From positions 55,800,001-55,864,000 of the forward strand of contig NC_088856.1 in assembly GCF_963853765.1 (NCBI RefSeq): a DNA stretch of 64,000 nucleotides. Direction: 5' to 3'. Within the stretch, counting starts at the first letter, position 1. Each line of letters opens with the position of its first letter. Positions 30,544 to 35,054 of this stretch are shown here, piece after piece. The position numbers and the translations under genes were made by a program. This DNA comes from Magallana gigas. Taxonomy: Eukaryota. Below the pieces are notes generated by a model. That model had not been told where the DNA came from. It saw nothing but the letters and a program-made list of their open reading frames with translations, and did no database searches.

Positions 30544-31662
30544 CATTAAGGTAGATCCTTGACGTCTACCGATTACTTCATCCCTACAAAATTCGGAAAT
30601 ATGTGTGTGGATCATCACATTTATTAGAATATGAATATACATTGATTTGTACCGAAATAAAAGTTTCATCAAACGCGATTGCTGTTTGTTCTCAATTTCA
30701 CCTGATTTCTAATCCTTACACTTTAAGCGGATTTCCACTCAATCAAATAAGTAGTTCTAAAATATAAAAAAATCTCTCACTTGAGCGCAACATTTTCATG
30801 GACTTCAAGACAATATTTTGATCAGTAATTTACTGGTAGTATCCAGTCTGCGTTATAAAAGAACACACCTACAGAATAATTGAGGATGTAAATATTTTAG
30901 CGAGACAATATTACAACATGTACCCTTCATGATGGGTGTGACAATGACAGTTGAGCCAGAGATGTGTTCAAGAACATAGCTGCTACACAGTGCTACGTAG
31001 TAACTACGCTATTGAGCAGTAAGCTAGTCAGCCCCCAAGTGTAGATACTCGTAGCCTAAATTTTTAATGCTTTAATCAAATTCATTCTGGCTACATCAGT
31101 TACCACTTTGTAACAAGCACGAAATCTGTTTTATCAAGTGATATTTCATTTATCGTAAAACTGTAAGTTATAATGATTTTTATTATGTATTTCATGTATA
31201 TTCCCGATTGTAATTTAAACTTCTCTAAATCACAGCATAATACACTGTCCCGTAAAGTTAAGAATATTTCTTTTATAATAAATTGTAACAGTACCAGGAA
31301 TAATATTATAAAAAGAAAGATTTTAACGTCAAGCGCCCGTGTATCAACACTATACATGTAGTATGGCGGCGGTGGTGTTACATGTATTTGTAAATGAACA
31401 ATGCATGTTTTCAAAACTGCAAAGAAAATTGACTGAAAATGTGGGATGGCAGTAGGAGATATACACATTGCAGTAGGTTATGAAAACAAAGATGTGTTTA
31501 GTTCATCTTCATATCAATACTGTGTTGTCTCTTTAAAACACATTGGATTTTGTAAGCAATATAATGTCTATAATTAAACGTGCACATAATGCTTTGTTGG
31601 CATTTTATGATAAAACTATAAATGAAACAACATGTGAAAAAGATGGGGTTTATCCAACTATT

Positions 31663-32529
31663 TTATTCATTCATTCTACCAAATATAATTTCATACAGTT
31701 CCTTATCAAGTACTTGAGAGTAAGAATGAAATAAATAGAGTTTTTCTTTCTTGTTATAAAGTTCAAACTTTGAGTACACTAAATTTACATGAGAAACTTC
31801 TGACAGAGGCTTCACATTCTCTATCTTATAAAATGAATCCTTCCTGTTTCCAAAGAAAGACAGCCGCGACACTTGGAGAGTGTCTACAACATCACCCACC
31901 CCTCCCACGAACATGCTTCCTATCATGCGCGGCATCATGTAGAAAACCAGCGGCATCAACATCACGTTAGTCACCACGAAGCCCATCATCATGTACGACG
32001 CCGCGGGAACCGTACAGAGGTAAGCCACCGCCGTTGGAAACAGAGTGGAATACACCAACAACTGAAATCTCTGCACGATTCTTATGATGTTAATGGGAGG
32101 AAAGAAATAGATACATTTGTACTCGAGCTTAGGACGTCCCACCTCTCTGTCCTGATCGTCCGTAGAGACCACCTCCCTATTTGGCTCAGTTTGACTTTCC
32201 CCTCCCTGGGTGGTTCCTGTGATTTCCCCACCCTGGGTGGTTCCTGTGGTTTCCCCACTATGTGGGGTTCCTGATTTCCCTGTTTTACAATGCAGCCTTA
32301 CATCTGTTGTAAATGATTTTCGAAGAAGATCCAAAATATTTTTTGTATTCCTCACCATATCCTTAGAGTGACACACACTGTTCACAACTCTTTGGGGACC
32401 CAGCAATTCATATTCACTACCTCTGGCTGCTTGGCTGCAGTGGTTTCTCCTGACAGTTTGGTGTTGTGTATAAATGGAGGAAATGATTTGTCTCTCCACC
32501 ACACAAAGATACCTCAAAGACAAGGTCAT
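31663..32529 (-). CDS. TMEM186: Transmembrane protein 186 (mitochondrial), single coding exon, 288 aa
   Basis: ORF with basic/hydroxylated presequence-like N-terminus; YKCIYFFPPINIIRIVQRFQL, two hydrophobic segments, then LQVSRLSFFGNRKD, matching my recall of the TMEM186 family (related to TMEM70). Confidence 0.75.
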   Translation of the reverse strand: MTLSLRYLCVVERQIISSIYTQHQTVRRNHCSQAARGSEYELLGPQRVVNSVCHSKDMVRNTKNILDLLRKSFTTDVRLHCKTGKSGTPHSGETTGTTQGGEITGTTQGGESQTEPNREVVSTDDQDREVGRPKLEYKCIYFFPPINIIRIVQRFQLLVYSTLFPTAVAYLCTVPAASYMMMGFVVTNVMLMPLVFYMMPRMIGSMFVGGVGDVVDTLQVSRLSFFGNRKDSFYKIENVKPLSEVSHVNLVYSKFELYNKKEKLYLFHSYSQVLDKELYEIIFGRMNE

Positions 32530-32853
32530 GATGCTAGTGAAACAAAAGATAATTTGTTAAATACAGTTAGAAAACATTCAATGTTTCTGCTAAATCAAAA
32601 CTTGTAAGCATGTTTGACATTTGGAACTCAATTTAAATTTAAAATCATCCATTCAAAATAAATGTATACAAATTTACTCAAATTAAAATTTACAAATGAA
32701 ACATGAAATTTTCTTATTTTGGTGAATAAATACCGCAATCACTGCCAGTGTCTTGCCTTGTTAATTACTGGTACATGGATATTTTCAGTCTGTGTTTTCT
32801 TTTGAAAATAACTTCCATGAATTACCTGTATGTACATTATCTCACCTGTGTTG

Positions 32854-34635
32854 CTAGTAATTGATGTTGAACAGGCGATCCAGAAACTGACCAAACTTGT
32901 GTGGCTGACCGGGAGGGAATGGCTTCAGTGAGGAGAAATCCACAGAGTGAAGGGTGTCCACCAGGGTACTGGAAAAAACGTGTACTGGGCTTGAAATGAT
33001 TTCACGGAATACTTAAAAAGTTATGATGTGAATCAAAAGGAGATAATGAACTGAGTTTTCTTTGGGTATAATAACAAAATTGTACACAGATAAGTTTCCA
33101 CCATATTTAGAGAGTATCAAAAACATGACATGTTAAATACAAGAATGGGAACCTACAAAAAAGTACTGATTCAGAAATAAAACAACCTACGTGATTACTG
33201 TTTTAAACCAAACAGCATAATTGAAATACCGGTAGTAATAATACCTGGACCTCCAGCTTTAATAAATTTCTTATATCTTAATATGGACTTCGTATAAAAG
33301 AAGGTCCCAACAGAGAAAACTAAGCGAGAGTGTGCCTATATTTAAATCCGTTATGTGGTGATGAAGAATTGTTTATGATAAAAACATTAAGAAATTTAGA
33401 AATGAATCAAAACAATTTAAAGAGGACGTCTGTACCTCACTGTGCAGTAGAACAAATGTCCGTCTTTATTGAGCTGATAGGCAAGTTCCAGTTGATGGTT
33501 GTTCATCAAATCGTTGTTGATGACAACAAGGAGTGGCTTGTTGGCCGCGAGGGTCTCCAAACAGCTCCCTGCACCTGTAGAGTAGGTGTAATCTACCCGT
33601 AATTCTTAGTGAAATTCAGTCTGAGTGGCAAGTTCTTCAAACATAACTGACAAGTCAGCCTGTTAAAGCTGTCCAACTCTGATGTAAATATCAATTCAAT
33701 CTTATCTAACTCTTTATTCAAACTACATTGTACCCATCACAGCTAGTACTAATTCAGAAGCTTTAAATTTTTCAGTTACTTCAATGTGACGGCCACATGA
33801 AATTAACATATCAGATTTATCTATTTTTGACTGTACAATGAACTTCATTTAACCTATGGTCAGCAGGACTAGACAAAATGGCCTATCTCCACAGGGTTTT
33901 ACATTATCATTTTGAGAGTAGACAAACATTAATGTTGAGCCTGCTCTAGATAGTTTCAGAGGTTCTTGTCAATTTGCTGTTTATGTGTATAAAATAATGA
34001 CAGAATCTACCATTCTTCCTGTTCCAATTTCATCAAACTATCTAGTAATTTTACGTACCATTATCTTACAAGTTGTTTACACTTACCAGCGTGACTTATG
34101 ACAAGACTGGCCTGTCTAATGTCCTCGGTGATGCTTGGTTTCAGTCTGTAAACCTCTACCTCTATCCCTGGCACTGTATCAATCAAAGGATCTCGTCCAC
34201 GCCCTATCTGGACAACCACCTTCCTGTATCCTAGATTAGCTAGGGTCTAAAGAGAGAGTTATAGACATAAGTGAAAAAAATCATCCTATCACTCATGTTC
34301 TCACAAAACACAGAAATACCGGGCATGCGCTGGACATATTACTTACCAAATATTATATTGCACATTCAAAAATCGTAATTTCATAATTTAATTCAATCTA
34401 ATGCATCTAAAATATATCAAATGAGAGAAGTTTTGAGATTGTGAAGGTCTTAGAGGAAATTCGAGATGCATTCCTTGCAAATTATTTAATCTTTGGACTA
34501 GGTTTAACTGAACCTGGGAATCGAGCTTACTTTGAGAACGGCAGAACTACAGACGTAGTCAGTCAGCTTCTCGAATTGCGTCGTTCCCACGGTAACAAAC
34601 ACAGAATTCTGTCCACGTTTCCTCGCACTCGACAT
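32854..34635 (-). CDS. ALG13: UDP-N-acetylglucosamine transferase catalytic subunit ALG13 (short form, 172 aa)
   Basis: Exons 34635-34531, 34246-34087, 33574-33436, 32968-32854; motifs [57 protein letters not shown]; GT-AG and in frame. Confidence 0.95.
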
Positions 34636-35054
34636 CCTCCGCGAAAAGGCGACGTCGGTACAAGACAACTTGTTCATATAATACATTGATAAAGCGCACA
34701 TAAACTTTGTCGGATTGCAACATTCAATTTTTCATAAACTGGTGTATTTTAGATTCTTTAACTTTTTGCATCATACTATTCCTTGACCAAAATCTATTTC
34801 TTTCATAAAACGAGATTTGATTAAATCCATCAGATTTGATAGATCTTGGTGCTGACGCTAAATGTTAATAATGTAAAAAAAATTTACTTTAATAACGTTG
34901 ATTCTTTTGAACACAAGAACAATCAATGCTTCGTGTTAAGTGACTGATATTTATCATATGCCATGCACATGACATGGGCATGGAAAATAAAGACACAGGG
35001 GTTAATATAATATCTTTTATTTAAAATGTAATAATAATACAGTAATAACAATGT

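Follow-up and report, generated by a model that had tools for sequence, protein, structure and literature searches.

ALG13 and TMEM186 share one spliced mRNA in cupped oysters, and the second protein may be made by leaky scanning

Are two unrelated proteins carried on a single spliced mRNA in the oyster Magallana gigas (Crassostrea gigas) and, if so, how might ribosomes reach the second of them? The question is raised by a 64,000-nt stretch of the genome (contig NC_088856.1, positions 55,800,001 to 55,864,000; hereafter the window, with all coordinates given as positions within it), in which the gene ALG13 and a second open reading frame (ORF2), assigned below to TMEM186, lie next to one another on the minus strand. 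An earlier note on this DNA had proposed from the sequence that the two are joined, in frame, in one spliced transcript. We addressed this proposal by aligning RNA data from two raw poly(A) runs (X21 and X22) and the assembled contigs of two further RNA runs (X1 and X4), together with comparisons across bivalves.

The coding exons of ALG13 (ORF1) lie at 34635-34531, 34246-34085, 33572-33436 and 32968-32846, and their conceptual splicing gives a protein of 172 residues. Exon 1 (34531..34657) consists of a leader of approximately 22 nt followed by codons 1-35, starting at the ATG at 34635. Exon 4 (32846..32968) contains the final 37 codons, the TAG stop at 32856-32854 and an 8-nt tail, CAACACAG, which ends in CAG and is followed directly by the donor GTGAGA. 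The intercistronic intron (32534..32845) is 312 nt long with GT..AG ends, and its acceptor AG at 32535-32534 sits behind a polypyrimidine tract. Exon 5 (31645..32533) begins at 32533, so that the ATG of ORF2 at 32529 follows after 4 nt, and the spliced spacer between the ALG13 stop and this ATG is 12 nt, in frame. ORF2 itself (31663..32529) has 288 codons and leaves only a short 3' end. A poly(A) signal, AATAAA (31662..31667), overlaps its stop codon, and the RNA contigs terminate 15-25 nt downstream. A motif scan of the 312-nt intron found neither AATAAA nor ATTAAA, only the variants AGTAAA at 32678 and AATAAG at 32718. Every coordinate of the layout described in the earlier note is thus reproduced, and the scan and the sequence also bear out its claim that no canonical poly(A) signal separates the two reading frames while one overlaps the TMEM186 stop.

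The joint between the last ALG13 exon and ORF2, 32533/32846, skips 312 nt (CT..AC on the plus strand, that is GT..AG on the minus strand) and is present in one contig each from X1 and X4. The 864-nt X1 contig covers 34657-34531, ALG13 exons 2-4 and 315 nt of ORF2, and the 1297-nt X4 contig comprises the last 11 nt of exon 1, exons 2-4 and then ORF2 down to 31670; within exon 5, contigs stop at 31646 in X1 and at 31670 in X4. Word depth is level over both genes (49 and 36 in X1, 43 in X4) and amounts to 49 and 43, respectively, at the two-ORF joint. In X22, four split reads and a further five with short overhangs fall on 32846|32533. Intron depth in this run is zero, and the bin beside the acceptor has a depth of 0.66, which is the expectation from its 11 exonic bases alone. 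By arithmetic, practically all of the approximately nine acceptor-crossing reads of X22 continue across the splice into ALG13 exon 4. Within ALG13, each of the three remaining joints is covered by 1-3 reads, and all of them are also found in the X1 and X4 contigs: 34246/34531 joins exon 1 to exon 2 (34085..34246), 33572/34085 joins exon 2 to exon 3 (33436..33572), and 32968/33436 joins exon 3 to exon 4. Junction reads had been named in the earlier note as the check on its proposal, and the nine X22 reads, together with contigs that lead from the first or second ALG13 exon into ORF2 or right through it, supply them.

The animal sampled in X22 differs from the reference close to the joint. An AA>TT change at 32859-32860 makes the last two residues of ALG13 KN, the pair found in sister species, in place of NY, and the first base of exon 5 (32533) is altered, with the stop codon and the 12-nt spacing intact. 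Since the joint reads carry these single-nucleotide polymorphisms (SNPs) of the animal's own at 32533 and 32859/32860, they are not reference artefacts. No pile-up of read ends within the 312-nt intron was seen in the aligned reads, and the interval from 34657 to the poly(A) site of the POLR1G-like gene upstream was without coverage. Spliced-leader-like loose ends were also absent, and the loose ends at 32532 match the end of ALG13 exon 4 exclusively, which indicates that the acceptor works in cis and that this is not a spliced-leader operon. The nematode and tunicate operons of that kind resemble the oyster locus in having an acceptor a few bases before the downstream ATG, but the oyster has no leader sequence.

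The two-ORF mRNA is approximately 1.44 kb long, appears to start near 34657 and ends about 20 nt beyond the AATAAA. In related species the contig ends correspond to 34654-34657 at the 5' side (in another species) and to 31644-31649 at the 3' side. A TATA-like element, TATTATAT (34676..34683, minus strand), precedes the contig 5' ends by approximately 25 nt and may, from a reading of the sequence, be the promoter element. Further ATGs are found upstream of the ALG13 start at 34701, 34686 and 34677 on the minus strand; all are in the ALG13 frame, so a transcript with a longer leader would extend the ALG13 N-terminus and would open no new frame. One ALG13 isoform in the databases, 186 aa long, uses 34677 as its start and is carried by one 1938-nt contig. 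We conclude that a single spliced mRNA carrying ALG13 and TMEM186 is supported, by joints or contigs in three of the four runs and by contigs from other Crassostrea species described below, as the earlier note had proposed. The two-ORF mRNA is the predominant form from this locus and probably the sole abundant one.

What proteins do the two reading frames encode? The ORF1 of a sister species, which is 91% identical to that of the window, shares 88-90% of its residues with annotated oyster ALG13 and 55-61% with vertebrate ALG13, and all of these carry PF04101. Exon 2 of the window by itself gives a weak match to the same family (Glyco_tran_28_C). On these matches ORF1 is assigned as ALG13, a subunit of UDP-GlcNAc transferase; ALG13 acts in N-glycan synthesis at the endoplasmic reticulum (ER).

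In Crassostrea angulata (96% identity) and two Saccostrea species the ORF2 protein bears no annotation other than ‘uncharacterized protein’, and an exact look-up of the window ORF2 protein in the contig collection returned no record. A profile built from eight oyster ORF2 sequences matched 204 proteins at E<=0.001. Among the ten best non-oyster clusters six are named, and all six are ‘transmembrane protein 186’ (frog, pigeon, axolotl, sparrow and Pinctada). A BLASTP comparison of ORF2 with the Pinctada TMEM186 gave an E value of 3e-18. Pfam found no family in ORF2 at E<=10, PF06979 included, and the Pinctada TMEM186 likewise lacks PF06979, while the vertebrate TMEM186 matches do carry it. The TMEM186 family is thus, judged by its sequences, divergent in bivalves. 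Features from a language-model protein atlas also place ORF2 with PF06979 clusters. The gene is present once in the oyster genome, where two further PF06979 loci, presumably TMEM70 and TMEM223, lie elsewhere. Because the profile matches, the Pinctada comparison, the PF06979 content of the vertebrate matches and the atlas all agree, we assign ORF2 as a divergent single-copy orthologue of TMEM186, a member of the TMEM70/TMEM186/TMEM223 superfamily with a fast-evolving N-terminal half. Both names given in the earlier note therefore hold: the relative of ORF1 aligns with oyster ALG13, and the ORF2 profile finds proteins named TMEM186. An AlphaFold2 model from the eight oyster sequences had a mean predicted local distance difference test (pLDDT) score of 36; a model of this quality does not allow a fold search and was set aside. 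TMEM186 acts in the assembly of mitochondrial complex I (bioRxiv 10.1101/808311).

The ratio of nonsynonymous to synonymous substitution rates (dN/dS) is 0.14-0.17 for ORF1 and 0.14-0.25 for ORF2, and the indels come in multiples of three. By these values, purifying selection acts on both reading frames. The N-terminal half of ORF2 contains a Thr/Gly-rich repeat with an in-frame tandem copy-number polymorphism of 54 nt, or 18 codons (32204..32257, minus strand), seen in three X21 reads as a joint that goes back 54 nt; C. angulata ORF2 has a 5-residue insertion within the same repeat. We know of no functional link between the ALG13 and TMEM186 proteins.

We next considered how far the arrangement extends across bivalves. 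Contigs from RNA of other Crassostrea species fall into two sets, with ORF2 identities to the window of 86-89% (L011-L013) and 73% (L001-L004). All of them are spliced as in the window and have the stop codon, 12 nt and the ATG in frame; the 12-nt in-frame spacer is therefore present in spliced contigs of at least two other Crassostrea lineages. A genomic-type contig (L005), with a 97-100% match between its ALG13 exons and C. virginica ALG13, has the layout TGA, 8 nt and GTAAGT, followed further on by CAG, 4 nt and ATG. In Saccostrea echinata the gene order (POLR1G-like, ALG13, TMEM186, lectin) is that of the window; 313 nt separate the ALG13 stop from the TMEM186 ATG, with an AATAAA in between, and the best predicted splice would give an out-of-frame spacer of 53 nt. 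The arrangement in a Saccostrea-like contig (L006) resembles this one. The TMEM186 of Pinctada imbricata stands by itself as a single-exon gene; it faces a PALP-domain gene head to head and lies on a scaffold other than that of ALG13. In Mytilus californianus ALG13 ends with its own AATAAA and has no ORF behind it. This distribution indicates that the adjacency of ALG13 and TMEM186 is a feature of the oyster family, and that the tight layout of 8 nt, intron and 4 nt belongs to the Crassostreinae. Of the conservation that the earlier note had suggested checking, the 12-nt spacer thus stands within Crassostrea; Saccostrea shares the adjacency only, the genes are unlinked in Pinctada, and Mytilus ALG13 stands alone.

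The bivalve comparison produced several further observations. In P. imbricata (L019:19874-20843, scaffold VSWD01000008.1) the last ALG13 exon ends in TAA, and 9 nt further on a 282-codon ORF begins, in frame with ALG13 and with no intron before it, which belongs to the Methyltransf_16 family (E 8e-14). From its sequence, pearl-oyster ALG13 seems to head a different two-ORF unit. This ALG13 is not poor in AUGs, having three in-frame and three out-of-frame ATGs. A search of the oyster genome with the Pinctada methyltransferase ORF gave no match at E<=1e-5, a result of little weight as matches are made exon by exon. A supposed upstream ORF in another TMEM186 contig (L023) turned out to be just open non-coding sequence. 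Intron 2 of M. californianus ALG13 (L020:54921-56541) holds 21 tandem copies of a 76-nt unit, in which the 3' end of ALG13 exon 2 recurs along with the adjoining 5' splice site (CATGCAG|GTAACT).

How, then, might TMEM186 be translated from the shared mRNA? Between the 5' end of the contig and the ORF2 ATG lie 553 nt, and in C. gigas and L001/L002 no more than two ATGs occur there, one being the ALG13 start and the other an in-frame Met codon that has U at -3. Mononucleotide shuffles of these 553 nt contain 8.6 +/- 2.7 ATGs (P 0.0065), and just 1.3% of 553-nt segments of the 64-kb stretch have two or fewer. Considering the dipeptides of ALG13 at which an out-of-frame ATG would be possible, such an ATG is used at 0 of 6-7 sites in Crassostrea, 4 of 8 in Saccostrea, 3 of 10 in Pinctada and 8 of 10 in Mytilus; ORF2 itself uses 8 of 14. 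L011 and L013 have one additional out-of-frame ATG, which opens an ORF of only 2-3 codons, and the single one in L005 opens a 5-codon ORF that closes before ORF2. The ALG13 leader, as estimated from contig 5' ends in two species (34654-34657), is approximately 19-22 nt. Kozak's work on leader length established that very short leaders make the first AUG leaky, and on this basis a leader of about 20 nt would be expected to make the ALG13 AUG leaky. Because AUGs are nearly absent before ORF2, leaky scanning is the leading candidate; it was missing from the mechanisms that the earlier note had listed (reinitiation, readthrough and internal initiation), all of which are weighed below.

The following model can be drawn from these features. 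In cupped oysters (Crassostrea/Magallana), ALG13 and TMEM186 would share a promoter, a cap and a poly(A) site. Ribosomes initiating at the first AUG, about 22 nt from the 5' end, would make ALG13. Some 40S ribosomal subunits would bypass this AUG, which has U at +4, would also skip the one weak in-frame AUG with U at -3, and would scan on without meeting another AUG until they reach the third of the mRNA, which starts TMEM186 and has A at -3. With only 8 nt between the ALG13 stop and the last exon junction, the mRNA would be expected, from established knowledge, to avoid junction-dependent decay. We put the probability of a shared bicistronic mRNA with TMEM186 translated by leaky scanning at roughly 0.55. 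Leaky scanning as a mechanism in itself, which is read from sequence features, we propose tentatively, at a little below even odds. A bolder version, in which Crassostrea has an obligate bicistron whose 172-codon ALG13 coding sequence has been cleared of out-of-frame AUGs for a 40S scan of more than 500 nt, and in which the ALG13 3' end may be a recurrent dock for second cistrons in pteriomorph bivalves, is possible though doubtful; the idea of a docking site comes from the Pinctada methyltransferase ORF that starts 9 nt after the ALG13 stop.

A number of observations weigh against leaky translation from a single shared mRNA. In codon-preserving shuffles the scarcity of out-of-frame ATGs alone is not significant (P 0.10-0.20), and the Crassostrea species compared for ATG sites are not independent of one another. 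The ALG13 AUG has A at -3 and its context is not obviously weak, and the 186-aa isoform from 34677 implies that some leaders may be longer. On the RNA side, the presence of exon 1 and ORF2 on one molecule cannot be proven from short reads and contigs. X21, a run of low depth, has no reads on the joint, and its bin depth of 1.39 beside the acceptor corresponds to approximately 1-2 reads running into the intron. An index search with the intron found 97% of its words in X25, another RNA run, and 7-17% in a few more, so some unspliced or alternative RNA exists, although not much of it. ORF2 has a raw depth about three times that of the short ALG13 exons, which could hide a second transcript; we attribute the excess to loss of split and polymorphic reads, most reads being 95-99% alike. 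Finally, a contig from a sister Crassostrea species (L010:1-1512) is unspliced and colinear with 33018-31595 of the window, comprising the tail of intron 3, exon 4, the intron that follows it and ORF2; it could be DNA, pre-mRNA or an internal-start transcript. The intron-derived reads and words, the greater depth over ORF2 and the unspliced contigs (L010 and the Saccostrea-like L006 and L007, which begin approximately 90-100 nt upstream of exon 4) would all fit a scenario in which the bicistronic mRNA serves chiefly ALG13 and most TMEM186 is supplied by a less abundant, monocistronic mRNA whose start lies within the 312-nt intron or a short way upstream of exon 4. However, some 9 of 9 acceptor-crossing reads in X22 are spliced to exon 4, with no depth in intron 3 or in the 312-nt intron, the X1 and X4 contigs pass the joint unbranched at equal depth, and L006, L007 and L010 may be DNA. 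We consider such an internal start improbable. Still further down the scale is the suspicion that the joint is an assembly chimera or derives from contaminating DNA. A contig that spans two genes does not by itself prove one transcript, but split reads from raw poly(A) data cross precisely this GT..AG joint and carry allele-specific SNPs to both sides of it, the identical joint recurs in independent studies and species, and contaminating DNA is not its source because DNA cannot yield a joint from which the intron is missing; we give an artefact next to no credence.

The remaining alternatives concern what ribosomes do on the shared mRNA. Termination at the ALG13 UAG with restart of a retained 40S subunit at the AUG 12 nt downstream would suit the short gap between stop and start, which is kept in four Crassostrea lineages, and reinitiation counts among the accepted routes to the second ORF in animal bicistrons (PMC4705651; PMC10275272). 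No UGGGA-type motif, resembling a termination upstream ribosome-binding site (TURBS), was found in any lineage over the final 120 nt of ORF1, however, and the final two ALG13 codons differ between species and also within species. ORF1 is long, at 172 codons, and ribosomes normally reinitiate poorly after an ORF of such length unless a special element tethers them. Reinitiation would also leave the scarcity of AUGs in ORF1 unexplained, and we judge it unlikely, although it ranks next after leaky scanning and ahead of the internal start discussed above. An internal ribosome entry site (IRES) in the 3' part of ALG13 is a formal option for any second cistron, with nothing specific in its favour here: the sequences give no sign of a conserved RNA element before ORF2, and the last part of ORF1 is variable, within species as well as between them. 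Claims of cellular IRESs also have a poor track record, and we regard one at this locus as very unlikely. The earlier note had further raised stop readthrough, by which an ALG13-QHSI-TMEM186 fusion of approximately 464 residues would be the selected product. That the ORFs are in frame with a stop-free spacer in four Crassostrea lineages, and that C follows UAG in C. gigas, would be in keeping with this. Against it, both the stop and the next base differ by lineage (UAG-C, UAG-A and UGA-G), the spacer codons vary too, and the predicted Saccostrea spacer of 53 nt is out of frame; the in-frame phase has a one-in-three chance of arising and would thereafter be inherited, and a fusion would presumably leave a mitochondrial membrane protein with its N-terminus hidden behind a cytosolic domain. 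Because neither the identity of the stop nor its context is conserved, the comparison lends readthrough no support and we place it last among the mechanisms, as hardly credible. From these sequence comparisons the mechanisms would therefore rank as leaky scanning, termination-reinitiation, a minor internal-start transcript, an IRES and a readthrough fusion.

Is such an mRNA without precedent? The closest analogue is human RPP14/HsHTD2, in which one nuclear mRNA likewise carries two full-size, unrelated, conserved proteins, the downstream one mitochondrial. HsHTD2 lies in what would be the 3' UTR (untranslated region) of the RPP14 mRNA, and the mechanism of its translation is not established (PMC4705651). 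The oyster case differs in its genes and lineage, in the splice 8 nt after the first stop, in the 12-nt gap and in its AUG-poor ORF1. The Drosophila dicistronic genes stoned and Adh/Adhr also have two long ORFs per mRNA that are not resolved by trans-splicing. The same applies to the conserved mammalian mRNAs GDF1/CERS1 and SNURF/SNRPN (PMC4705651). Neither the mammalian nor the Drosophila pairs include ALG13 or TMEM186, and the oyster intercistronic intron is unusual beside them. Bicistrons of green algae (Chlamydomonas and Auxenochlorella) show depletion of ATGs before ORF2, and mutagenesis supports leaky scanning in them (PMC11291117). They resemble the oyster locus in that the transcript is exclusively or predominantly bicistronic and ATGs are depleted before ORF2, the observed/expected ratio being approximately 0.23 in the oyster against medians of 0.43-0.49 in the algae. 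Algal ORF1s, however, are usually small with weak Kozak-like contexts, whereas the oyster ORF1 has 172 codons and A at -3, and the oyster locus is an animal case known from sequence. In the literature that we searched, ALG13 and TMEM186 are linked nowhere beyond a gene list, and we found nothing on nuclear bicistrons in Crassostrea and no known molluscan case; mentions of ‘bicistronic’ in a snail genome paper concern mitochondrial genes.

One further feature of the RNA data lies outside the two-ORF transcript. A few X22 reads with reversed mate orientation, at a depth of approximately 0.5-1, map to 31200-31493 and 32964-33257, which suggests sparse plus-strand transcription downstream of ORF2 and inside ALG13 intron 3.

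We conclude that the oyster locus produces a real, conserved two-gene animal mRNA, but not an unprecedented one. Animal nuclear bicistrons that encode two full-length conserved proteins are few, and how they are translated is mostly untested. The oyster case is clean and natural, as both genes are single-copy and of an essential type, one serving N-glycosylation and the other mitochondrial complex I assembly, and its layout can be dated to one family, with Saccostrea, Pinctada and Mytilus, which lack it, as natural controls. Annotation pipelines that allow one coding sequence per mRNA mislabel such loci, ORF2 being an ‘uncharacterized protein’ in oyster genomes. The locus offers a direct test of whether the need for ribosomes to scan through a coding sequence can shape that sequence and, if the proposed mechanism is true, this would be the first mollusc leaky-scanning bicistron described with two full-size conserved proteins.

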